NCBI GenBank assembly: GCA_977030845.1
Contig: OZ365110.1
Span: forward strand, 40,300,001-40,364,000
Source: Fimbriosthenelais zetlandica
Taxonomy: Eukaryota
Reading direction: 5' to 3'
Length of the DNA stretch: 64,000 bases
How positions within the stretch are numbered: position 1 is the stretch's first letter; each line of letters begins with the position of its first letter. Below, in pieces: positions 6,201-49,999 of this stretch. The notes below the pieces were generated by a model. The model was not told the origin of the DNA, ran no database searches, and worked only from the letters and a program-made list of their open reading frames with translations. Position numbers and translations under genes: made by a program.

Positions 6201-6420
6201 TTACGCATTTGAGGTGAGTAGAGTAAAACAGCGACCATATCCGGGGCTTGTTAAGTTGCTTTGCCAAGCGGTAAATGACAGTGAGGGGGTGGGGGCGTGG
6301 AGGACTGGAGGGGTGGAAGCGACAAATGGGCGATATACACATACACACACACCAAGATACACATCTGGCCGTTTCTTTTCTGTCCTGATTAGCACAAGAA
6401 GTCTTCAATTTACTTAGACA

Positions 6421-6565
6421 GGTAGAGAGATAGTGTGAGTGAGGGAGAGGGAGAGAGTGTGAGTGAGGGAGAGGGAGAGAGAGGGACAGGGAGAAAGGGA
6501 GAGGTGGAGAAGGGAGAGAGAGGGGAGAAAGGGAGAGAGAGAGAGGAGAGAGAGTGAAAAGAAGA
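6421..6565. repeat. GA-rich purine tract
   Basis: Nearly pure A/G on the plus strand, with an internal direct repeat AGTGTGAGTGAGGGAGAGGGAGAGAG. Confidence 0.9.
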
Positions 6566-9500
6566 CTATGGGGGGAGGGAAGACCCAGAAGCGACCAATT
6601 TACATTGCCCCAGATGTCATATTTTTATCCAGATAAAGTACGTTACAATTAATATTTAGTATGTGGGCCAAATTGACTCTGGTTCCCACCTAAATAGAGC
6701 ATAGCATTGTTTCAACTGATCCAACCTAGTATTCCAAGGCCATAAGATAGTCAGTATAGCGTACAAGCTACTTTTTTCTTTCCCTATGTATTGAATCTAT
6801 TTATTTCCTAAAGTTTCACTGTTGTGATCCCAGCCTTTCTCAAAGTGACAGAGAAAGGGGAAATATTCAATCATACATCTTGGTGAATGCTGGAACACCG
6901 GAACGAGGACGTGTCCAGGTGAGAGAGATACACGTCTGATAGTGTCAGCCCCCTACTCACCTGTCTACCCGGGGAATCACTCATATACCTACACACCATA
7001 TACCTTTAACAGATCCCACGGCAAGGGAGCGTATCTCACTGGCATGGGATTAAAGACAGTGCACCACTGCATGGTGAGAATTGTCCTGGGACACAAGTGC
7101 GACCTTCGAGTTACAGGGAAAAATGCTCTATAGTTGAGGAAGCCTTATGCTTTCGACACTTTTCAGCACAATTTGTAACTTTTACTTCTAGGTAATAGTA
7201 CAGGATTGTCATCATTCCCCCGACCCCCTCCCAAGACCTGGGCGAGGTGGTGATTATCGAAATTCCAAGTTGATTTTCTGGCCCTGTTTCATTAGTGAAC
7301 CGTGGTCGCTATTTAAACTCATACACATGTGTCAATGGATTTCCCTGATTTATCGTTTGAACATCCTAGTCATTTTTCTTTGAATTCCCTTAGTTTCCCT
7401 GATGGCTGGGAACCCTGTAAAATTAAATTGCAAACAAATATTGTGCGTTCGCCACTATAGCGTGTCGCACCACTGGGGGATGGGTCTTAAAGCCCTTCGC
7501 CCTATACTGAGTGATAGGCCTGAATGTGTGGGCACTTACCACCTTTATCATAGAGGTGTATTAACCCCACATTACACAGGTGAGACCGGTAGACAGTGGA
7601 GGTATTGTATGAGGAGACATAGCGGTATTCACGGGCACTACCTTAAGGAGGCTGGTGTATGTATACTGACGCTAATAAAGCCCAACAACCATGCAATCTC
7701 CATACACTGCCACACGACCACCTCCACTTTCTACTCCCCCTCTCTCTGAATACAATACAAAGCCCTCACGTCTATAAGGGATGTATATATTATAAAAGGG
7801 ATCACGCCAGGAGAGATTGACTCTATACACTTCATACCTGATGATCTTTCCACACGATTAAGCCCTTAAGTGTCTCACAATCGTGGGCCCCTCAAAAGCC
7901 CCCCATCACCCCCCCCCCCCCCCATACCCTCCACCCCAGCAGCTGCTATAGAGGTATCAAAAAGCTGAAGAGACAGACAAGAGTTTATCAACTCAATCAG
8001 GGACCTTCGCTAATTGAGGCTATTTTTCAGGACCTTGTGTCATGGGCTTGCATGTAAGAGTGACAGGCAAAAACATTTTAAAAATTAATTGGTACAAAAA
8101 GTTCAAATCTAAGTTACAAACAGGAGTAAATGCTAAACAGAAAAAAAGTTCAATTTAAACGAAGGGAGATTTTTCAAGGGCAAGCACATTGAAAATGTCT
8201 TAATTAAAATAACCCTTTAAAACAATTTAAACGTTTCCTCAATACTGGATAACTATCTTAGGATTAGTTTCAATTCTTTTCGCCAGATAAGAAAGGGGAT
8301 TCATGTAAAGAGACTGCTGTGGGGGCAGTTGTCATGCAATACTCCCGCTAGGGGTTCTGTCTCCCTATCAGCCGAATCTGACACTTACTTCATTGGCCCC
8401 ACCTTTGCGACTCTTTGGCTCGGGGCTCATAACTTGTATTTTTCCGCTAGTTTTTTCCTATGAAGTGGTGTAAAGGGAGAGCTAGTAATCTGGGGGTATA
8501 AATATACTATGAGAGCTTGGATCAGGGTATAATTGCTGACTCTCTTAGTAAGACCAGATGGGGCTGGGGTAAGGGTGCCAAGAGATCCAGGGTGGGAGGG
8601 CTGAACATATATTATACTTAAACCAGTATATTATGCAAAACCATGGTTAAACCGCGGTCATTAACTGCATTATTATCTACTTTACTAACCGCTCCGGCTG
8701 CTTATCTGATACAATGTAAATTATTCATACCCTCAGCCAAAGTTTAGATTTATCAATATGCAGACACCTGGCTCCTTCAAATGAATATCTTCTTCTATCT
8801 CATTTGACCAATTGTTTTTAAATTCATAAACTTTTCTACTGTTTGAAAGAGTTTAAAAGGTTTGAACCCTTTATTATGTCCAAAATGTAATCTATTTCAG
8901 CTGCAATTAAGGTTTACATAATGCATTAAATGAAGAAATTCTTTGCTTCATTGGCCAGATTGATTTTCATTTCTAAAGGTATTTCTATATCGGCTGAAGT
9001 ATTTCCAATTCCAACAATCTATAGATCATGATATCTTTGGCCTGTACCAATCCATTTCCACAGTAATTTCGTAAGGTTTCATAAATACACTATAGTAACC
9101 ATACAAAGAGTTGGATGGGATAGACCTCAAGTAAAAGACTCCGTGAGTGATCTTTTAAGCATTGATCCATACATATCTACATATACATGTCAACTTATGA
9201 TGGGTTTTAGATTGGTCTCATATACTAAGGTATGCTACGAGGCACTGGGCGATGTGAAAAGTGCAGGAAGTGTGACATAAACCGTCTATCTTCCTGATTC
9301 TCCGCTATGCCATATCCACCCCATCTCTTGAAACCACGGAGATATGATTTCTTATAAAACACTGAGGCCACTCATTATAGTGTGGGAAAACATGGGGCTC
9401 AGATGTCAGTAAATCAGGAGTTATTGTGACAGGCGGAGACGAGCACATTAAATACTGTCATAATAAGGATGTGAAGGAGGTGGGATCTTTCTTTTTGTGT

Positions 9501-13995: not shown

Positions 13996-14371
13996 CATAA
14001 CTGTGAATAAAGTTGGCGAGGTAGAGGTCTAATTCTCTCACGCTCACGCTTATATGGTGAGGATTGACACATAGGTTGGGATGTAGACAGTCCAATGCCT
14101 TCTCCAGCCTCTCCCCATCTGTGCTCTCCAGGGGGATGGCTTTGAAGAGAATGACCATGACAAGATCTAGACGCCACACCTTGTCGGCCTGGCGGAGGCA
14201 GTCTATCCGCCTCATTTTCCCCTTCTGGTCCGGGTTGGAAAGGACACAGACCGGGGGCCGCTTGCCTGTGATGGACAGGACAAAGTCCTCGCGGCATTCT
14301 TGTGTTATGTCCTTGCGCAGTTTGGCCAGCAAGCGCGACGCCCACTTCTGTTTGATTTCAGGTTTTTCATT
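13996..14371 (-). CDS. NFI: Nuclear factor I, DNA-binding/dimerisation (MH1-like) domain exon, 376 nt, phase 0 to phase 1
   Basis: Translates [125 protein letters not shown], which is the NFI core with its conserved Cys residues. Acceptor tatttccag|AAT and donor TATG|gtacgt. Confidence 0.98.
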
Positions 14372-22319: not shown

Positions 22320-22463
22320 NNNNNNNNNNNNNNNNNNNNNNNNNNNNNNNNNNNNNNNNNNNNNNNNNNNNNNNNNNNNNNNNNNNNNNNNNNNNNNNNN
22401 NNNNNNNNNNNNNNNNNNNNNNNNNNNNNNNNNNNNNNNNNNNNNNNNNNNNNNNNNNNNNNN
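22320..22463. other. Assembly gap (144 N) next to a GA-rich tract
   Basis: Run of N in the sequence. Confidence 1.
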
Positions 22464-24055: not shown

Positions 24056-24211
24056 CTGTAATTCTTCCTTGACTCGCCTCTCCTCGTCCATCGTCATTCT
24101 CTTTTCATGTTTCTTGTAGTATTTGCGCTTTGCTGCCTGTAGGTTAAACCAGGTGTAGGAGAATGCCTTAACATGCGGCAGCAGCGCCTCAATAAATGGA
24201 TGAAACTCATC
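24056..24211 (-). CDS. NFI: Nuclear factor I, N-terminal part of the DNA-binding domain, 156 nt, phase 0 to phase 0
   Basis: Not in the ORF track frame; I translated it by hand as [52 protein letters not shown]. Acceptor atatttcag|GAT and donor TTACAG|gtcagt. It joins in frame to the 14371 exon. Confidence 0.98.
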
Positions 24212-25601: not shown

Positions 25602-28600
25602 TCGACTCACAATATAATTCCTATATAATTAGATCATTATAGGAATGTCTTATTTCTAAGCGAGCAATATATACCGACAGATTCATAAAACATACAAAAT
25701 AGAACTCATTAACAGCTTCAGCTACATTGTTAATAATTATGTACTTTGTCAGCTAGATAGATTACATACACATTGCGACAGTTCTTATGTCTTATGAGCC
25801 ACCCGAATGGAGTCAAAAATCACCAGAAGCAATCCAAACATTGGTAGAGGCAAAGATCATTATACTTTAATAATGGCCCGAAAGTAATTACATGGGAAAA
25901 TACTTAAGATTTGAGTCATACTATTTGTGGTATACGTAATATTTCTTATTACCACGCTCGGGTCAAGAAGGGAGGGGGAGTGAGGGTAGAAAGATGGCGT
26001 CATCTGTTGTTCACTCATGTGGAAATCTAAAAACAAAAGTGGTTCACGAGTTGTGATCCACCGAAAATTATTGTGAACAACATAAATTCACGCCCTTCTG
26101 ATCCCCAAATATACTTTCAAATTTCAGAAAAAAATCTCCAAACCTTCATTCTAATTGCAGAGGGGAAAAATGCAATTATAATTGTATACATTATTAATCT
26201 TTTACAGTACAATAGTGCATATCAGCAATTTATATTGTCTAGTGGGACCGAATGGAGGCATTGAGTTGGGACAGAGAGTAGAAATGGCAAGGTCAGAAGA
26301 CAGGGAACTATTCCATACATGTATACACTACAATTCAAAAGTTAGAAATATACAGAAATGAAAACACCTTTCTGGATAATAATATGCTATTCAGAATTCC
26401 ACAAAGAGAGGGAAATTAATACTCTAGCAATTACATGCAAAGGGTAGTGTAACAATGAAGTGTTTTTTTTTGTATTTTTCATTTGGAATGAAGTCACATT
26501 CTCACTTCTAGGTCCCTAACTTTGTGTGAGTAGTGTATCTGTCGAGTATATTAGAGAGCTCTGCTGCTACACTTCCTCCTCCTATACTCCAGTAGTAACA
26601 TGCTGCTGTGGCTATAGCATGGAATAGAGCGGGCATGACGAGTGGTGGTGGTGGACAAGCTGTGTTCAGTGCAGCATACTATGCAGGCAGACCATGCCTC
26701 TCATGCCATTGGGTCACGGTTCTGGCTCGCTGAATCCCTTAACACTTACTTCTGATAGAATTCAATGAATTCCTCAAAGACTTAGAAGATCCCAAGCAAT
26801 CTTACTTAATGCTTCAAGAAAGTAATAAAAAAAAGTTCAAAAAATATCTAATATGGATGGTAAATTCCCCGGTGTAAATTCCTCACAAGTTATCAATTTT
26901 AATGACAAATTTCGCCATGTATCTGGAACTTTTATTACCCTGATGTGCTGCAGTTCAGCTGTCCCAGTATTTTCCAGCTTAATTCAGCTAAGGAAATTGC
27001 ATATCCCATGCGATAATGATAGCAGCTAGCTATACTAATGATAGTTTTAAGGGAGGGAAAAGCATCACAAGAGTTTCGAGGAGTTATCAATTTGTGTATT
27101 GATTACTTTGCCTTTATTTTGGTGGCTAATCACAAAGGGTCATGGGTGGAGAGAGAGGAGATAGCATTTTCATTGCAGCCCAGTCAACATGGCCTTTCTG
27201 CCCCCGTTTCCCCATATGATCACAGGAGACTTTGGTAGCCGTGAACGAAGCACCCAATGCCTTGACCATTCTCGCGTTTTTACTTGACAAAGTCATCCAT
27301 CTGCACCCAGCAATCTCTTTTGCTGCACCCCTACCTCATCCCACCCCTTTTTTCTCCCCCGCCCCCCAAAACCCCCTTGAGCATCACGCCATGCTGTACA
27401 TTGGGAGCACAGTGTGTGTTACATCGCACGCACAGGTCAATCTGTGCGAACATGCGTGCGTGCGTACATGTATGATGATTCCTATCACCCCGCCCCGCAC
27501 CCATGTCCCGTTAAGGGATCATCCTGGAATTGCACTGGCTAACCCCCACACCCCAACCCCATTCCCACCCACTCTCACTCAACCTCCAGTTGGTTGGATT
27601 TGCAGCCCAATATAACAGGGGCGTGCCGTGCCATTTCATTGAGGAGACGCTCAAAATCGTCTGCTTTCAGGCAGTCTCCCCAGCCTGCCAAATAAAGGGC
27701 GCCTTTAACATGAGGATTAAGGCAATCAGAGGTTATGTACAAACGCCCCGATCCACAAAGGCAAACGCCGGGCGTGTAACACGTTTATACACCGGTCCTC
27801 TATTGATTTAAAAGGGTTTGTCCCCAGCTTGCCTAGCATGCCTGTAATTGGAAAAAGAGGAAATAGTCCGATTCAACATGAAAGGCATTCCTACTCTCTA
27901 TACCTCCAACGCTACAGATGGCTTGTGAGGAAGACTACCAATGTTAAATCGACATTTCCATTGGTACTTTAAATGTTCATGTAGGCTTCCATTAGGCTAT
28001 ATAGGCCGTCCCCTTGGATTTTCTCAGTTTTGAGTAGGCTTAATCACTCGTAGGGGGTGGGGGTGGGGATTCTGCATCCTCTCCCGGATCGGCCATCGAC
28101 TCTGGGAAATCATGGATTGTGAAATTTAAGCACTGGTCAAGACCAAATGAGAAGGATACCGTCCCAAGACTGGACATTAATTTGTCTCTGGTAAAAAAAC
28201 AAATTGGGAATCCCAGAGGAGATATTCTAATGACCATAGTGGACCGTGCCTGAGGGCATCTGACCCCGCGGGTCATGCTAGATCCGTGTGAGAGTGTGTC
28301 CAGGGATTAAACAAGTAGGGAATGAAAACCAGATGATGAGTCAAGATAGAAAAAAGACAGGGATGGACTCAGCAACATGGTCATAAGCAGAATACATGAA
28401 TTAAAGACACTCCCATACATTTTTTGGGATGGGATAATTGCCACTCCTGCACGATGAGTTGTTGGCTTGCCAAAAAAGCATCTGAAAATTCCTGAAGCCA
28501 AGGACCCCTTCGATTGGTCAATTGCTCGCTAACTTCCGGTTTGATTCACGGTTCGATCGCGTGGGCGACCAGTTTAAAGTTACAGATGGTAAATCTGTGA

Positions 28601-29127
28601 TATGATCACAGCACTGGTAAAGGACAATGGCAAGGAGAATGCTTGACGTTCAGATTTAAACTCAAAGTTCAGCCATGGTTTTGATACCATTTGGCATTAA
28701 ACTTGCTTTAAAATGTAACAAAGAAAATGAATGGTTCCCAGGGATGAATTTCTGTTAGAAATAAGGCAAGTTGTTCCAGGAAGATTGAAGGCTGAATCCA
28801 CCATAGCCAGAATAGAGGTGGTGTCCCATTACCTGGCCAGGCAGGCGGGGTGAAGGGCCAGTTGTGGGAATCAATTACTAGTCAATTATTGGCGATGAGA
28901 GAGTGGAGATGATCAGACGATCATGTTACTGAAGCCAGTCAGAGCCGAGATCAAACTAACATTAGCCTAAATACACCTGTCTCCCATTGACATCTCAACA
29001 GATGCACTGATGCAGTCTCAGAGAGTGCGAGACAAGAAACTTATTGACAAGAAACTTACTGACAAGACTCCAGATAAAGTACCAGCAATTCAGGAAATAC
29101 TTGGCCAAAAATGTAGATTAGTATTAA

Positions 29128-33200: not shown

Positions 33201-35382
33201 GACCTTTTAAAGACAAGAAAACAAGATTTTGACTGAGTACATATCCAGCACAAAGTGGTATTAATAGTGTATTGGACTGGACGGTATGTGTATTATATAT
33301 TTGGTTTAATCCCGTTAATCAGGTCTCGGCAGAGCAAGTAGCATTTACCTGGACCCTGACTTAGGTCTCCCCGTTAGAGGCATTGAAAGAGCATTGACAG
33401 ACTTAAAATCCAATAGCGATTAATGCATGTTCCCAGGCCAACGTCCAAGTTAGTCTACTTACATATCAGAGCGCACAGCCAACTTATAATCCACTCAATA
33501 CAAACTCTTGTTTTTCTATTATAGCATCAAGATTAATTTAATCTTCTTCGGTAATTAGCAAATAAATAATCTGGGTGGATTTTTCTTGGCTTTAAAACTT
33601 TGAGGAGGTCGGGGGTAAGTTAGTTTGTGAAACTGAATATTATAAAACATCTGAGGATATACGCATCCACCTGTTCTTCATGCATCGTCGCCGATTAATT
33701 GATCGCGGGCGGTATATATTAACGGAAAAAAATATTTGTGGTACATGTAATTGGGAAAGGGCTTGCAACTGGTATATACCTGTTGAGCTAAAAGCCCCAG
33801 AGTGACATCTTATGAAAAGTTTCACTTGGCTTTAAATATTTTAGAGACTTTTTGGATAATCTAACTTGTGTGTGTTACCAAGATATAATATATCGCGGCA
33901 ATGTAGGGATATAAATTATATATTACTGACATTAAAGATACTAGTAAGAATTCAGATTAACCTATACCAGTTATATATCTTTTCTTTATTTTGGCTACAG
34001 ATTCATGCTGCCACATACACGGGCATGCACTGGCTTCCTTGAGCGCATTCAAAGCGCGCCAAGTATGCAAGGCAGGTTAAAGTGAGCCTGAATTGGAGGT
34101 GGGGGTGATTACTTGTGGTAGGGAGGGTGTTTTAGTGTCAGATCATCTATGGATTACCATCACTTGGCGAGGTGTTCATGGCTCAGGTGTTGGTAGTAGC
34201 TAACCCGGCGCCAAGATCATTGACTTTACAGGTAGCTACCAATAAAATGGCGCCTATATATATAGAGTTTCTCGACTCAATTCGCCAAGACCTAAGTGTA
34301 AAATAATGAATGAAATCTAATCGTTAATATATTAAGATTTCATATTAAAACTTAAAAGTGCAAGTATAGTTTTACTTATTCAAAAATATTCATTTGGACT
34401 CAATGTTGAATCTAAAGAAAGGCAGAAATCACATCATTCATCTCTTTTTCAATTCAAGTTAATATATTTGATCTTAAATATCAAATTGGGAAAATTCAGG
34501 TTTATATTTGCTACTTATATAAGGCAAAACACACCATGAGTCTGTTAGTGGCCCTTGCCCAAATATCAGTCTTTTATCCCATAGGAAGTATAGGATGTGC
34601 ATAATTTGGAAGCCCATCAGGTCAAGAGGTCCAAGTCGGCCACCTTGGCTGGCCACTAAGTGACTGGGAAGAAGTCCAACTGGACAACAATGAGCCCTGC
34701 GTTTAGTAGGGTAATTTCTTGTCATTGCGCCATGTAAAAGCGAGGACATCAGAGGAAACCATTGACTGAAAGGATCCCCCAGGGGTTATACCGCCGCCCA
34801 GGCCCAGCTCTCACCGGGCCTAGTCGCGGCTCGAGCCGGGAAGCTCAGCAGCCTTTTCTCGGTCCCATTCCCCTCACGTCCCCGGGAAGAGGTGAGGTCG
34901 GGACGCGCGGGGTGTGATGCTATCACACGGTACTAGGACGGGGTGAGGGCACCCCCATGTCCGCTACTACTCAGGGTCATTTATATACTACTGTGGGGCA
35001 CATTGTATGGCAACGCCTGAAACCCTAAACTCAAATAAAACTCTATTTGGTTAATAGGATTAATAACTTGATAAGTTAGTATACATAGAAGTTGCAGTAG
35101 CCCATTGATTACATGTATTGATCCCAGAAGTCTGTTTCCTTGCTAATGCAAGCAGTTCTTTCTCGTTGTGTTTTGTGTAATAATTTATAAGGGAAATGTC
35201 TCTCAATTCTTCAGATATGGATGTTTATATACACTATTGTCCGTGACATTTTAGAACCTGCATTTATATAGTTAGGAGAGCTGAGGAAACCTTGGAATAT
35301 TGGGAATGTGAATGGACATGATGAAATCAATGCTAAAAATTAAATTAAAATGTGTGTATCCAGATTTAGAGTTGATACTAAC

Positions 35383-35778
35383 CACACAACTGTATCCTTC
35401 AGCAGGCAGGTATGGCGCTGGCATGCCTGAAAGTCTCATGTCCATCATGCTGCCGTGAGGGTGGTGGTGGTGATGTTGGAACTCAGGGGGTGGATGTGGT
35501 GGTGGCCCGTGCGGATGGTGGTGGTGGTGGTGGGGATGTCCCAGACTGAAGGCCTGGTCAGCAGCGGAGGAGGTACTACTGGCCGGGGACAAATGTGGGG
35601 GCAGCGACGAGGCTGGCCCCAGGGGAGGGGGTGCCAACCCCAACCCCGGTCCCGCCGGGAAGTGGTGTGGAGGGGGCAGGGAAGAGTTGGGGTATGGGGA
35701 GTAGGGTGACGGGTGGGGGTAGGGCGTGTAGGGGTGTGGAGGAGGGGGATCCACCACCCGTGGATAATCGCCAATCCA
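35383..35778 (-). CDS. NFI: Candidate NFI 5' coding exon, His/Pro-rich, ending MMDMRLSGMPAPYLPAEGYSCV at a phase-0 donor
   Basis: The frame is open from 35805 with protein-like low-complexity content (PPPPHPYTPYPHP, HPHHHHHHPHG, mixed CAC/CAT codons). Donor GTG|gttagt at 35382 is in phase with DEFHPF. The 5' boundary is uncertain: a weak acceptor tctaatcag| at 35779, GTG at 35757/35754, or the first ATG at 35448. Confidence 0.55.
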
Positions 35779-36822
35779 CTGATTAGACGCAATTGTAGCG
35801 ATCCCTCACTGTGGCCACAAGGACGGCACTGCTGGAGAGGCCTGCCACCCCTCCACCCGCGCCCCTGGACCCTGGAGTTGGAAAATGATTGCTGATGGTC
35901 CCTTAACAATAGAGATACAACAGATCCTACAATGCTTGAACTGGTAGCACTCCTGTGTCCAATTTCACTCTTATCCTCCTCCTGCGCTTGGTCTTTCTCC
36001 TCCTGGGTGGTACTGATTTGGGGGATGGACTCACAACACTCACAACAATGGTACTCCGTGGTAAAACCCTCCAGTGAGTGGTGTGTGTCTAGCTTACCCA
36101 CCTCTCTGTCCTCCTCCAGGTGTTGTTGGTATTGTTGCTGTCCCCCGTCCTCCTGTGTTAGGACTTGCTGTACCACTGTAAGGCAGTAGTAGTAGTAGAG
36201 GAGGAGCACCAGTCCCCTCTCTTCCTCCTCCAGTGTCGCAGGATGAGCCCCCTCCACGTGCTTCTTGTTCCCACTAACTGTTACTACCACAATCATAACA
36301 CATTAGGTACTGCCGGGCGTCCAACTGCTTACTAGTATACGACAGCATTCGTCTGGTTTCCACAGGAGAAACGCGAGAGGAAAGTATAAGGGGGGATAGG
36401 AGGAGGAGGAAGTTGAATAAGAGAATATATATATACAAACTAAGTTGTACTGGGTACAGGCAGGAGTATGTATACTGCGGCGGATCAGCACATTGCAGTA
36501 TATTAAGCTGTTGTACAGGTCTCCACTTGCTGCTGGAAGTATAAGGATTTGGCTGGGAGTTCACACAAGTAAAGTATAGTCCCAGGTCGAGTAAGAACAC
36601 ATAGAGCTAACAGCACACATGTAGCGGTACCGTTGCTCCCTTCCTTTCCTGTACGACTACCACTGCCTGGTCGCCTATATGTGCCGTATGTATGGTATGG
36701 GTCTACTGAACACAGTCACTTCTCCCACAACACTAGGGATGCTGCTACTGCTGCCCCCTAGGCGGACGGCGCGGCAACTAGAGAGGTGGGAACTTGAGGT
36801 GTTGCCACCACACAACTCTTAC

Positions 36823-36900
36823 CATAGCTCCCAATGCGCTGGGCCGAATAACATGGGCCCCCTCTCTATACCACTCCTAGTCCTATAGGCTATACCACCA
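36823..36900 (-). CDS. NFI: Candidate alternative first exon ending in the initiator codon (GCT ATG|gtaaga); upstream boundary unknown and nominal
   Basis: ATG at 36825-36823 has G at -3 and is followed directly by donor GTAAGA. Splicing to 24211 would give MDEFHPF, an N-terminus known for vertebrate NFI isoforms. Confidence 0.35.
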
Positions 36901-38934
36901 CTGTACCTAACAACACTTCTAGTTTGGATCCACCACAAAGGGGCAGAAGTGCAATAGTATGTATGCCATATTGTATAGATCTGCCTCTATACCACTCGCC
37001 GGCGAGTAGTGTTTTGGGAGAGGAGGAATGGTGGATCCAAGCTACAAGCAAAGGATCCAAATTCTCATTTGGGATTGTGACGCTTGTATCACACAGGCGT
37101 CAGCTGGTGGGTGAGTCAGTGGTGGGTGGTGCAGGTGGTGGTGCTAGTGAAATCCATAGGGGATCGACTATCCCTTTAACATGTACCATAACTTCCTACT
37201 CCTGGATCCTGCTAGGAAACCATTTATTGTTGCAAGAACCTATGGATTATGATTCAGCAATAAAACTGACTATATCCCATAAATTTAAGCTTATGGGAAC
37301 TTATGGGAGTTGGTGGAGCCACTCTGGGTCCCTACTGCATTGTTAGATCCATGCAATGGTTGATACATATGTGTATAGATGGCCATAACACAGACGTCTG
37401 TGTAGGTCTGGAATCTATACACACAAACAAATAGATGGCTAACGTTATAAGATGTATATACCTGAGATGGTACAGGCCTATTGGGAACTCGCTCAGTGTA
37501 TCATTGGGTGCACAGCGGTCAAGATCCACATATCATCACTTGGGACAGTTTTCCATTATATTTTATGTATGTTTTATGGTTTGAAACTCATGGTTACATA
37601 AATTATAAAGTGAAAACATTTATACCATGGTTTCTCTGAAAGATTATTAAAGGATGCAAAATCGAAAATGACCCCAGTTTCATTTTCATGAGGTACACAT
37701 GTTGTATCGGTTCAATGAATCAAACATACTGTACATGTATTGATATAATTTTGAGAATTAAATATTGAAATGATTATGGAATAAACTTGTCAGTATATTT
37801 AAAAGTTGCAGAAGAAATGCAAGAGTCTATAAACAAATATACATTTATGCATGCTCGGCCTATTTCCATTATAGATTTAATACAAAACCCATTCACAAGT
37901 AATGCCTTGAACCCAATATGAATAATAGATATGTCGTTACAATGGTAGGGGCAGGGCAGCTAATGATTCCTTTCTCATCCAAACACTGCCAACAAGTTCC
38001 CGGCAAAAAGGAGACCATGACCCGTGAAAGGTCATCGTGTATTTTTCTTTAGCTGACCTTCAGGAGGAAAGAGTGTCACAAAGAAGAGTGAGGGATATTT
38101 AGTCGGTTAGTATTGTGTGCGGCCAATGAAAGTCCCTTTAGATTTTCAATACAAATTACCAAAAACCTTCTGCGGTTCGGGGGGCTATACTATAGGTCTG
38201 CGTGACCATATTGTCCTCCTAATACTAAAGTCTCAAACATATCAGAGTCCAGTCTTCCGTATACCACCGGTTCATAACAGAATTGTACTCGCATGAAAAG
38301 TAAATATCTAGAGGAGGGGCAATCACCACTCGAGGGACAATAGAAACAGTGCTGAAGTTCGCATGATGTTCACTGCAGACACCACAATGGCCATGGTCTA
38401 TGACCGACACATGTTTTTGATGTGCAATATATAGGCCCAGATTGTTTTGAGCTTTGATGGGTATCACACTTATTGGAAACTTAAGTGCATCATCAAATAT
38501 TTAGGATTGTCTGAAATTTGACTTGTTTCAATCCGAGGGATTTATTACCCGGTAAAAATGGGTAGTTTGTCTTCTCTTTTGTCAATGGTCAAACTGTTTG
38601 AAGTCGGAATGAAATTAGCACTTATTAATTTTAGAAATATAAAAATGAAATATAAACAAAACAAGGTATACCATTCGTGAACCAGTGAATCCTTTAAAAT
38701 GGGAGACAATACCATATAGAAGCCTCAGATTAATGCTCGGATATACGAGGCACCAAGAAGAAAGATTATCTAAGCTCCCCTGGGAACACCACCCCACCCC
38801 TCCATATCCCACCTCCCCATTTATCTATTGTAGCAACTGTGTGACAAAAAAAAGATAATAGTAGGCTACCTCAGTGACTGTCCCTACAGAGGTGTCTCCA
38901 TTTATACCACTCGACACAGAAAATACCAGAATTT

Positions 38935-39650
38935 GGACCTCCCACGTTCCGCGGAACGCGCGCCAAACGCCCTCAGCCATTGGCGCTCCCCAACTTTTGG
39001 CTGATCTGGTACCACCAAAAGGACATCGTAACCCCTTGTCCGAGTCTTCCCGCGGTCAATTACAAAAATTATTGGCCATCTCCAGTGCCGTGGGAAGTGA
39101 TTTGTGGGACCCGAGTTGTGGAAGCCATGTCGCGCGGGTCAGTGTAGTAAATAGTATAGTGGGGGAGGATTTGGCAGGTTACGGTCGGACCGGACCATTA
39201 CAAAAGCGGCTACATCCTCAGCGCGGGCCCTCACAAGCGGTAAATGCTGGCAATCGCAGATCCGACAATGGTAGTTGGCTGGGCGATCAGTAACCGCTGC
39301 CAAGAAGGGAAAGCGGCGGCGGCGGCCGGAGGGGAAGGCCGTGCTTGTCCCGTCACCAGACAAGACAATGGTCCTAAATAGAGGATGGAGGGGTCGCGGG
39401 GTCGGGCGGCGGGAGGTGGGGGCTGAAGGTCCGGGTAAAAGGCCAGGCCATGACCGGGGAATGCCGAGGTGGCTGTAGCCTGCGAAAAAGGCCCGTCACC
39501 GCTCTAATGGTACTACTTAGACTGCGGTGAATTTAGATGATTAGGCGTTTAGCGCGGAATTATCTGTCGTGGGACAGATATAACAACAGCTTTCCGGGCA
39601 GGGCCGCGGATATAATGGGTTAACGCGTCCATAATGCCCCGTGAACAATC
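38935..39650. promoter_or_regulatory. GC/CpG-rich island upstream of the NFI coding exons; candidate promoter or non-coding first exon
   Basis: Dense CG dinucleotides and a (GCG)n run in an AT-rich background. On the minus strand, a TATTTA at 39380-39375 is followed by a pyrimidine/GC-rich leader. Confidence 0.4.
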
Positions 39651-46239: not shown

Positions 46240-47110
46240 ACCTAACCATGTCGCGAGTGAGATGTTAGATAAGCCAAGCCAATCAATTCAAACACTTTTA
46301 CTGACTCATTCTTCCAAGTGAGAAGAAGGAGTCAAAGTTATTATACCCACAAGCATATAGATCTTGAGAAATGGTCGAGTGAGGTGCTCGCAATGCTCAC
46401 GCCAGACAGTTTAGCTGCGGCGCGGGGGTTTGAGAATTGAATGTGTTGACTAATGAAGCATAAAATATGCACGGGCACATTGACAGTGCCAATCAAACTA
46501 AGGAGGCGAGTGCACTGCTTTAACCGAAACAAGCCAGCCAAGCGGATCTACATCAATTAGTGCAATGAAGGGAAATATAATGGACTTGAAAGTCATTAAA
46601 ATGAAACCAGGTAAAATCAGGGGCTTCTGCTGCAATCCCCTTGCAACCCTCCGCAATTCTAACTTCATCAACCCAGTGATCTATTACCTTAGATTTCATG
46701 TAGAAAGTGAAAGAGAAATTACCAAAATGTTGGCCTGTAAATTTATATATGAAAATATTTATAGATTGTAATACATATTACCCTATGGAAAGGGGGTGCA
46801 ATTGTGTGCATGGGCCCATTAATTGTATAATTTTCTAAAATTTCTATAAAGAGGCTGACCTCTTGAGCTGCCCCTTGGGATCCACCTTTGCTAAAGAGCT
46901 TCTTCTCACGCCCCCCCCCCCCCCCACCCCGCCCCACCTTCTCCACCCATTCCTCAGCTTCTCCAATCACACACTTTTTGGCGCCCTCCTCCCTATAAAA
47001 GTGGAAGCAATCACTGTGGGCGCCACCAGTGGCGCGGCGCCCAAAGGAGGCGGCACAGACAAGCAGTGGAGTCGCGCCATTGACAAGACATGCACGCTAA
47101 CTCTGAGTAG
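46240..47110. promoter_or_regulatory. Candidate enhancer region with clustered homeodomain/TALE/CCAAT-type motifs
   Basis: TGACAG next to TGCCAATCA (46481-46495), further CCAATCA and TAAT/ATTA cores, and CpG-rich patches. Confidence 0.3.
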
Positions 47111-49999
47111 TAGCTTTAGATTGCTGCTGCTTAATACATTTATGCTGCAGATTGAGTCCATTTCTCTCAATCCAATCATTTCATTCGCTATTCCTTACTG
47201 CGAAATCATTGTTTTGGGGCATTTGTTAAAAATTCAAAAATGGCCTTCTCTGAACGTATAGGCAAATTCATTTATTAACTAAATGAATAAATTTGTGTAT
47301 TTTCTGCAACGTGAAAATGCAAAATGCATGTTAACCGTTTAGGGATCTGGTTCTTCAACATGTTTGGCATATTGTCAAGGGAGATTTGGGATCAAAATAT
47401 GTCCCAGGTATGATAAGCTAACAAAAAGTCTTTGTCTCTCCTTCATATGATATTATAGACTAGCGATCTATACATTAAACATAAAAATACATTATAAAAG
47501 ACATGGAAGCAATGCCTGATACACTATATCAACATCATTAAACCTTAACAAGGGGGCTCCAATCAGGCGTGTCGCTACTAGTGCTATAGAATTTTCATCA
47601 CCATCAAACCCAATCGATCAAGTTGTGTTAAAAAATAATCAATAGAATAGCTTATTAAACCTCCACATTTTATACTCCATGAAGATATCATATGGAATGT
47701 TTTTGTAAATATAAGTATCCAGGAACTTAGTATTTAGCGGAATTCAATATTCCTTGATAATCTTCAATATTTTTCCTGATAATTATATACAATTTAGAAT
47801 ACATGTTGTGGGATTGTCGTACCGAAACTTTCTTTAAAAAGGTGTAAAACAATAACTAAAGATTTCTAACACAAAACCTGCTGAAGGAGACTTGGGGAAA
47901 AAACCATGTCTACAATGTAAAGAATGGACTGCATAAGGTGACGTGAATTAAGACAATAGTATGTATTGTTACTCAGTCATGGACATGATCCAACACCGAG
48001 TTTATTCCGTATATTCATGAATGACATCCACACATAATTCATTAATCGTTCTATGCCTTGGAGAAACGCCCATGTGGCGCAATGAGGGCAGAGGAACCCG
48101 GTCCTGGCATAACCATTGATAATGTGGTCGTCAGGTCGAGGCAAGGGCGCCAAAATGAAACTAATACATGTATCTAACTAGGTCCATAATAATATGTCTT
48201 GTTATAATTTTCAGTCCCTGTAATTCATTTAATTATAGATACAAAGATCCTATCCTGCTAATGAATAAGTATTTTTTTAGATCTTTAGTATCATCTATAA
48301 TCTGATTTTACAGAACTGAACGCATACGGTCCAGTAAATATTAATGGACCTCGCTGTAATCTGTATAATTTTGTAGCATATTAGATTCTAACGATGCTGA
48401 ATGTCCATGAACCAACCATCTAATCAAGCAGTATAAAAATACTAAACTAATAAAATCGATATGGAATTTCACTATACCAGCACACATTTTTTTAGGTGAG
48501 ATTGGTGGATGTTTTAGAATTAAATCAAAATGGAAAATCCGTTCAATTTCGTGACATTAAATCAAATTTTCACAATGCCAACCAATTCCCCGTCAATTCT
48601 CTCCCCTCGTCAATACAAGAGGGGAGAGAAGTAATGGCGGACCACAATTATCACAATAACTTTACATAAAACACCCTGCCCCTGACAGGGGTCTTTGTGG
48701 AGGTGGTCATATAAATCAGGACCACCTCTGTTTCTCCCACCCTACCCGCCTGTCGCTAACACCATGACAAATGACACCCGCCATCCTAACGAGTCCCTCC
48801 ACACCTGGAACACCACCAAATCACTATCCTAAAAAACGTCAATAATTGATAAGACAACCCGCCGATCTGCCTCTGAAATATGGCTAATTTTCTTACAGCC
48901 TGATAGCCCATGTTTTAACATGGTTTCCTGCGATTTACGAGGGGAATTTCTCCAGGCGTCCAGTGCGATTTATTTCTCTGGGGTTAATTTATTAATTCTC
49001 TCTCCACCCCCTCTCTCCGACTCTCCTAACCCCCACCCCCTCAACCCGACCCCGAGGGGAGGTTCCATAAGATCTGTGACATGGGTGGGGGGTGGGTAGC
49101 CCCCAATACTAATTGAACTACAAAAATCATCCAGAGAGAGGGGTGGGGTCTATGGAGTCAAGACCACCCTCTCTGGATCCACCCCTCCCCCCACCCCACC
49201 CCACCCTGGAGGTGTGTTTTCTGAAGGTTCCGCTAGGTGTGGCCCCTACTCCACAGTGGCAGCTTGCAGGGCTGGTGTTTGGGGGGCAGTCCGCCTGGTT
49301 TGCTGGGTCAGTTGGTGCAGCTTCAGCAGCAGAAGCAGGAGCTATATCTCCAGCACAGAGCAAGCAAACCAGCAGGGAAGCAACCATCACCTTTGCCTAC
49401 CTATTCTAGCGTCCCAGGTTGACTAAAACAGCACTGCTGGAACTAAGTGTAAAAATAGGTCGGACCCTCCTATGTTCAAGAAACACTCAAAATTTCCTAC
49501 TCCAAAGAGTACAGGAGCCATCCTCACACATCAACAAACGCCTTGTTTGTACAGAGACCTAAATGTCTAATTTCAGGAGAAAAAAAATTCCCATAGACAT
49601 TCTTTTTCAATTTTAAAGGGCACTTAAACTAATTTTCAATATTTCTGTACACCAAATGCACCTGAAGCTATTTTAATTATAAGGAATGGGTAAGGGCTTT
49701 GGGAAAAAAATTAATGCTGCTTTCCCATCTCTGTAAGAACCAGGGCTTGTCTTTATTACTAAGAGTAAGAATAGTTGATGATAGTGGAGAGACTGAATAA
49801 TGACTTATATACGGAGGTCACGGTGGATGACCTGGTGTACAACCAATACCTCATCATACTTGCAATCAGTGGTGTTTATAAATGGCAATGTGATGAGATA
49901 ATAGTCTTTTTTCTTTAATCATATGACAGTGTCTCCCCACAACGGCGCCAGAATTAACTAATGTAAGCACCAAGATGGGAGGGAGAAGGAAGCGGATGG

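Follow-up and report, generated by a model that had tools for sequence, protein, structure and literature searches.

A histidine/proline-rich (His/Pro) reading frame lies upstream of the DNA-binding domain of an NFI/CTF transcription factor gene of Fimbriosthenelais zetlandica. The gene is on the minus strand of the 64,000-nucleotide (nt) stretch analyzed here, hereafter the window, which spans 40300001-40364000 of contig OZ365110.1 (assembly GCA_977030845.1; 447 Mb in 79 contigs); all other positions are counted from its first letter. A first-pass annotation had taken the frame for a possible N-terminal extension of NFI, begun at a near-cognate codon or supplied with an AUG by splicing. We favor, with modest confidence, a plainer reading: the His/Pro tract belongs to the untranslated leader, and initiation of NFI takes place at 35448/35445. 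The first exon of this single-copy NFI gene would hold a long 5' leader free of AUG, with the tract as its 3' part. Ribosomes would scan across this leader and initiate at the AUG cluster 35448/35445, and the resulting 22-residue N-terminus would be joined through the phase-0 donor at 35382 to the exon that begins with DEFHPF at 24211. The His/Pro reading would then be a by-product of C-rich, partly triplet-repeat DNA and would lie outside the main protein.

The identity of the gene is established by its DNA-binding domain, both parts of which are matched (Pfam PF10524 and the MH1 domain PF03165). A genome-wide search over all 447 Mb finds a single PF10524 match and hence one NFI gene. The layout described in the first-pass annotation was reproduced in full. 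Behind a TGA at 35808-35806 the minus strand stays open for 141 codons, the first ATG stands at 35448, and the donor at 35382 is compatible with the DEFHPF exon at 24211, both being phase 0; GTG codons are found in frame at 35757 and 35754, the latter with G at both -3 and +4. We call this frame, which runs into the NFI coding sequence, frame 0. The 35382 donor makes a candidate junction with the acceptor of exon 2 at 24211, phase 0 on both sides. The donor scores 4.9 bits on a generic matrix, and equally good sites occur about 5 times per kb.

The ATG-free stretch and the probable start of NFI

Neither strand of the window has a longer run without ATG than the 848 nt that precede 35448; next in length come runs of 386 nt on the minus strand, across an N gap, and 394 nt on the plus strand. 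Because the run reaches 490 nt beyond the in-frame TGA at 35808, the absence of ATG is not a property of the open frame 0. Four ATGs close it (35448, 35445, 35439 and 35424), all in frame 0. The first of these has A at -3, and the second combines A at -3 with G at +4, which is the optimal context. Selection on a scanned 5' leader leads to avoidance of ATG in all frames, whereas ordinary coding DNA tolerates out-of-frame ATGs. From 848 nt without ATG, followed by four ATGs of the same frame, we infer a scanned leader with a conventional start. Judged in this way from the DNA sequence, the stretch would be transcribed as leader and 35448/35445 would be the point of initiation.

Over 35383-35448, the short segment that begins with the first ATG, frame 0 alone scores positive in a codon model in which stops are counted. 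This model was trained on 10,157 codons from kinase and HSP70 exons of the same genome and gives NFI exons 2 and 3 scores of +0.26 and +0.22 bits per codon, in the correct frame only. The 914-nt leader stretch is less stably folded than 19 of 20 shuffled versions (z = +2.05), and an Rfam search of 35200-37000 returned no match.

The His/Pro-rich frame

Since the C-rich composition of the tract leaves a given frame open in 29% of 5000 dinucleotide-preserving shuffles (and at least one frame in 67%), and since frame 1, the frame of an upstream open reading frame (ORF) described below, is likewise free of stops over the whole of 35449-35805, the openness of the His/Pro frame is uninformative. Two of the three frames are open, and the open His/Pro frame by itself is no evidence of coding. 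The 357 nt are 46% C and in part built of triplet repeats, (CAC)n and CCN runs, with CCN triplets frequent in all three frames (33, 21 and 28). The layout of a near-cognate extension, stop-free and AUG-free with a near-cognate codon in good context, is present at this locus, and chance also gives it in 29% of shuffles.

The His/Pro peptide has no homolog in the collections searched. Matches were absent at E <= 0.001 from a phmmer search of 1.84 billion representative proteins, from a word-indexed search of 5.8 billion and from JGI metagenome contigs; there is no Pfam match and no paralog in the same genome. In a protein language model the nearest neighbors of the peptide are low-complexity parts of developmental transcription factors (0.83-0.89), which by calibration is a lead only. 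Conservation of the extension in other species is not borne out, with no homolog in the protein and metagenome searches and, in Bugula neritina, the sole species whose NFI ortholog has a readable first exon, a stop codon directly before the ATG. As to translation of the extension, the layout stands, and a 3-base periodicity (p ~0.001) speaks weakly for it; a frame open by composition, the lack of homologs, a negative codon score and the Bugula stop speak against it without refuting it.

Comparison with Bugula neritina

The conservation comparison rests on Bugula, whose NFI (P0093, GCA_010799875.2) is the only ortholog with a readable first exon. The two genes share a Met-rich start (MVMYSMTMPCMPAE... 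in Bugula, where the first coding exon encodes 30 residues), an MP..PAE motif and, ahead of DEFHPF, a donor of phase 0. In Bugula, too, four ATGs stand in one frame, preceded by 264 nt without ATG. Unlike the present gene, Bugula has an in-frame TAA directly before the first ATG, and its upstream DNA is AT-rich and filled with stops and lacks a His/Pro tract. What this comparison shows is confined to one point, namely that a long N-terminal extension is not ancestral. About 19 kb upstream of exon 2 were also read in a 4.5-Mb ENA contig, and no first exon was recognizable there, such exons being short, variable and not to be found without transcripts.

Several observations weigh against the leader reading. 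The likeness of the predicted N-terminus to that of Bugula is short, tBLASTn does not return it at E <= 1, and Bugula is a distant relative. The Pfam score is 78.0 bits with or without the YSCV/DEFHPF junction, which earns the junction no credit. The codon score of the His/Pro frame, -0.20 bits per codon, is weak evidence against translation, as the model penalizes any Pro/His-rich protein. The tract moreover shows a 3-base periodicity (chi-square 21.6, p = 0.0014, rank 12 among 1263 windows), with the greatest variability at the third codon position of frame 0, the pattern of coding DNA; the call of this phase is, however, weak (p ~0.10). Synonymous codons are mixed within it: His is written as CAC 15 times and as CAT 5 times, and Pro as CCC 12, CCA 10, CCT 6 and CCG 5 times. 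Finally, a plain leader leaves unexplained the AUG-started, coding-like, 283-codon ORF in frame 1. Taking the small-intron isoform, the non-AUG start and the assembly indel together, we nevertheless regard it as unlikely that the His/Pro tract is read as protein.

The upstream ORF in frame 1

This ORF begins at ATG 36296 and ends in a TGA that overlaps the ATG cluster at the NFI start (Table 1). Frame 1 is without a stop for 285 codons, and its sole ATG is codon 3 of the open stretch. Over 36295-35809 the other two minus-strand frames contain 13 stops and frame 1 none. The coding-like signal begins at ATG 36296 and ends at about 35930, the other 161 codons of the ORF scoring negative. The codon score of the coding-like part lies above those of the whole set of 2985 length-matched non-coding windows (0.21 at most); these windows represent intronic and intergenic sequence and include no other 5' leaders, so that the true false-positive rate lies above the empirical zero. 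Both components of the score, synonymous and amino-acid, are positive, as they are in exon 3. Periodicity in the frame-1 region reaches p = 7e-4, and two 9-nt tandem repeats within the ORF preserve the frame. The region is built of short triplet-like repeats, with CWG GAG GAG GAN recurring to a total of four copies in a single phase. Pfam gives the ORF no match above noise; it likewise has no paralog, no relative among JGI metagenomes and no exact copy in the protein collection searched, and the protein language model does not recognize its product.

Candidate splice sites between ATG 36296 and NFI

Joining frame 1 to frame 0 requires the removal of 2 mod 3 bases. The donor whose first intron base is 36101 is the best in the 1.3 kb examined and compares with 8.5 bits for the exon 2 donor; equally strong sites occur 0.46 times per kb. 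Its phase fits the phase-0 acceptors at 24211 and 35778. Excision of a hypothetical 152-nt intron (Table 1) would join the two frames and drop TGA 35808, and so would that of an alternative 323-nt intron from 36101 to 35779. The acceptor at 35778 is phase 0 and stands behind the sole AG between 35804 and 35612; it is preceded by 12 pyrimidines in 20 nt and has no good branch site. The donor at 35930 reaches 3.2 bits, below real donors. Across 35930-35779 the codon score is -0.12, which is non-coding-like, and the candidate introns are 53-55% GC.

Sixteen introns reconstructed from HSP70 paralogs of the same genome served as the reference for real introns. Many of them measure 121-300 nt, most of their donors reach 5-12 bits, and AT-rich tracts holding 10-18 pyrimidines per 20 nt precede their acceptors. 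Just upstream of 35778, position 35808 offers a better acceptor, and its use would place a stop in frame 0. The first-pass suggestion that splicing supplies an AUG has gained a concrete candidate, ATG 36296, which a 152-nt or a 323-nt intron with its last base at 35779 would connect, but the donor at 35930 and the acceptor at 35778 are both weak. A splice route from AUG 36296 into the His/Pro frame is possible but poorly supported.

Table 1. Features of the NFI locus and its upstream region, in window coordinates. A slash marks an exon boundary.
Feature	Position	Strand	Description
His/Pro tract	35449..35805	-	119 codons, frame 0, no stop or ATG; Pro 33, His 20, Ser 14
ATG-free stretch	35449..36295	-	848 nt, all three frames; 0 ATG against 8.4-9.3 expected
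Probable NFI start exon part	35383..35448	-	22 codons, MMDMRLSGMPAPYLPAEGYSCV, ending at phase-0 donor GTG/GTTAGT, GT at 35382-35381
TGA closing frame 0 upstream of the His/Pro tract	35806..35808	-	in frame
Frame-1 ORF	35445..36296	-	ATG 36296, 283 codons, TGA 35447-35445 overlapping the ATGATG cluster
Coding-like part of the frame-1 ORF	35931..36296	-	122 codons, Glu/Gln-rich; +0.27 bits per codon
Candidate donor GAG/GTGGGT	36096..36104	-	intron base 1 = 36101; phase 0 in frame 1; 8.7 bits
Hypothetical 152-nt intron	35779..35930	-	ATT/GTAGGA ... tctaatcag/TGG; excision would join frames 1 and 0 and drop TGA 35808
NFI exon 2	24056..24211	-	DEFHPF to EELQ; after ttcag/; PF10524 (NfI_DNAbd_pre-N) 1.1e-26
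NFI exon 3	13996..14371	-	ends IHSY; MH1 fold; PF03165 3e-13 on 14371-13994

Three further observations concern this upstream region. Read as the coding strand, the plus strand fails, with 4-7 stops in each of its frames over 35809-36296. Two more ATGs, 36348 and 36303, both in weak context, open an ORF of 24 codons that extends across ATG 36296 to its end at 36276. A pyrimidine-rich tract follows (TA)5 at 36435-36425, and together they could be a TATA-type promoter.

Among the supposed non-coding control windows of the codon model, the top scores (0.15-0.21) belong to 58641-59087, 6201-6607, 46834-47200, 28281-28687 and 39121-39567. These windows may hold unrecognized exons or transposon ORFs.

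Alternative readings

That translation of the NFI messenger RNA (mRNA) begins at AUG 36296, about 850 nt upstream, and yields either a separate 283-residue product or a long NFI isoform, is a substantial possibility, though short of an even one. Translation of the frame-1 ORF (36296 to 35447-35445) in its own right, as a second protein or a very long regulatory upstream ORF (uORF), with NFI reached by leaky scanning or by UGAUG reinitiation, is possible but on the doubtful side. It is compatible with the favored NFI start, the His/Pro DNA then being read as a Thr/Pro/Arg-rich tail, and it would jointly explain the open frame 1, its codon usage, the stop-start overlap and the lack of AUG. A codon score above 2985 of 2985 non-coding windows, the periodicity, the frame-keeping repeats and the 13 stops in the other frames argue for it, as does the AUG-free path that leaky scanning to a second start requires (PMC3105428). 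Set against these are an ORF without Pfam match, paralog or metagenome relative, a language model that draws a blank, a signal that ends at about 35930, triplet-like repeats that can mimic codon structure, and a null set that contains no other 5' leaders. Reinitiation after so long an ORF is normally inefficient, which weighs on that route to NFI. A long NFI isoform that starts at AUG 36296 and is shifted from frame 1 to frame 0 by the intron 35930-35779 or 36101-35779, with the short form made by leaky scanning, strikes us as quite unlikely. Its predicted product would have an acidic, Gln-rich segment and then the His/Pro segment before the DNA-binding domain. Both introns are 2 mod 3 in length with phase-0 ends in the right frames, the sole AG gives 35778, and the genome has many introns of 121-300 nt. 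Codon usage looks coding-like as far as 35931 and scores -0.12 across 35930-35779, and the periodicity of the tract and the absence of AUG from both exon parts would be accounted for. The splice sites speak otherwise: 3.2 bits at 35930 against 5-12 for most real donors, an acceptor with 12 of 20 pyrimidines and no good branch site beside a better one at 35808 that yields a frame 0 stop, and introns of 53-55% GC where real pre-acceptor tracts are AT-rich. Splicing from 36101 would in addition discard 171 nt that are still coding-like (p = 0.007), the ongoing openness of frame 1 would be a coincidence, and frame 0 is without homologs.

About equally improbable is an alternative first coding exon, in which the 65 codons from ATG 36296 to 36102 would be spliced at GAG/GTGGGT straight to the DEFHPF exon. 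The His/Pro tract would then be intron in one isoform and leader in the other, by analogy with vertebrate NFI genes, whose alternative first exons alter only a few residues before DEFHPF. The 8.7-bit, phase-0 donor at 36101 matches the acceptor at 24211, but such a donor in the right phase within 366 nt has a chance expectation of about 5%; those 65 codons reach +0.31 bits per codon (p = 0.0005), but the coding-like signal runs past the donor; and the junction ...EDRE/DEFHPF extends the Pfam match by two profile positions (79.3 versus 78.0 bits), but the gain of 1.3 bits is negligible. Less probable again is a near-cognate start, at GUG 35757/35754 or an in-frame CUG, that would make a His/Pro N-terminal extension beside the AUG form. 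Chance alone would yield an open frame and near-cognate codons, the tract scores negative in the codon model, the searches detected no amino-acid conservation, and Bugula has a stop at the equivalent place; to this a preprint adds the report that most such extensions from ribosome profiling show no signs of selection (bioRxiv 10.1101/2022.05.02.490320). In its favor are a frame 0 open from 35805, the G at -3 and +4 of GUG 35754, a path with no out-of-frame AUG, the periodic tract and, as a lead, the language-model nearness to developmental transcription factors. Leaky scanning past a near-cognate start would likewise fit the absence of AUG from the tract. It is extremely improbable that an assembly error, with one base missing in 35805-35449, conceals one uninterrupted ORF that would lead from ATG 36296 to the NFI DNA-binding domain. 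Neither frame 1 nor frame 0 has a stop in this interval, a single base would join them, and a C5 run lies at about 35745; yet the contigs are chromosome-scale (79 for 447 Mb), short homopolymers are rarely miscalled in such assemblies, and the lack of ATG in all frames would be left unexplained. A programmed -1 frameshift from frame 1 to frame 0 was discarded, as inspection of 35805-35449 by eye saw no X XXY YYZ slippery site and the prior for such an event in a cellular gene is very low.

Relation to known systems and implications

The locus resembles vertebrate NFIA/B/C/X in that DEFHPF opens a phase-0 exon behind a short first coding exon and that PF10524 is combined with MH1. It differs in being a single gene, in the intron that splits the DNA-binding domain, and in a predicted N-terminus of 22 residues versus 9. 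Also unlike the vertebrate genes, it has a leader of at least 848 nt that is AUG-free and overlapped by a long ORF. Long or overlapping uORFs and bicistronic arrangements are familiar from ATF4 uORF2, SNURF-SNRPN and MOCS2, and termination-reinitiation at UGAUG or UAAUG is familiar from viruses. As in these established systems, an AUG-started leader ORF here ends on the main start (UGAUG) with no AUG between. With 283 codons this predicted ORF is far longer than regulatory uORFs, and it belongs to no known protein family.

If the plain leader reading is true, the gene is an ordinary NFI ortholog with a short N-terminus, and it counsels caution with C-rich leaders, where an open frame of 120 codons is nearly free of information. 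The leader is unusual regardless, with 848 nt that lack AUG, are weakly folded relative to shuffles and are overlapped by an ORF of exon-like codons ending on the NFI start codon. Were the frame-1 ORF translated, the locus would stand as a clear invertebrate example of a bicistronic mRNA read by leaky scanning, or else of an NFI protein with a large disordered N-terminal domain; such a domain is not known from vertebrate NFI proteins. A separate product would make this a dual-coding leader, kept AUG-free so that ribosomes still reach NFI.

Conserved non-AUG extensions do exist in human genes, and half of them have no intervening out-of-frame AUG, an arrangement that lets both isoforms arise by leaky scanning (PMC3105428). 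The His/Pro tract is like the extensions of Ivanov et al. 2011 (PMC3105428) in being an in-frame, stop-free and AUG-free stretch upstream of the first AUG, with near-cognate codons in good context. Those extensions, however, are defined by codon-level conservation across species, whereas the openness of the frame here is explained by composition.

Structure of the NFI gene

Exon 3 is identical to the NFI exons of other animals at up to 125 of 126 residues; among the named matches, Argonauta shares 120/126 and Capitella 118/126. The DNA-binding domain is interrupted by an intron at EELQ/NEKPE, and virtually every genomic reading frame recovered from another species shares it; arthropods, molluscs, annelids and Bugula are among those named. 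This appears to be an old intron position, absent from the single large vertebrate exon. For the CTF/NFI transactivation region (PF00859), tBLASTn searches of the window with the Argonauta and other partial NFI proteins matched exons 2 and 3 only; further NFI exons may lie outside the window or be too divergent for tBLASTn.

NFI intron 2 contains a run of 144 N at 22320-22463, with CT-rich simple sequence on both sides. In another species (locus ENA ERZ25072384), an ORF of 997 residues encoding reverse transcriptase and integrase (RVT_1, RT_RNaseH, rve) was found; since it lies 2 kb upstream of NFI exon 2, a retrotransposon would sit within NFI intron 1 of that species. The Urechis unicinctus protein entered as 'NF1' (UniRef W8Q262) begins MIM-DEFHPF and, after the DNA-binding domain, continues as a coiled coil of tropomyosin type (PF00261), so that a chimeric complementary DNA is the probable source.

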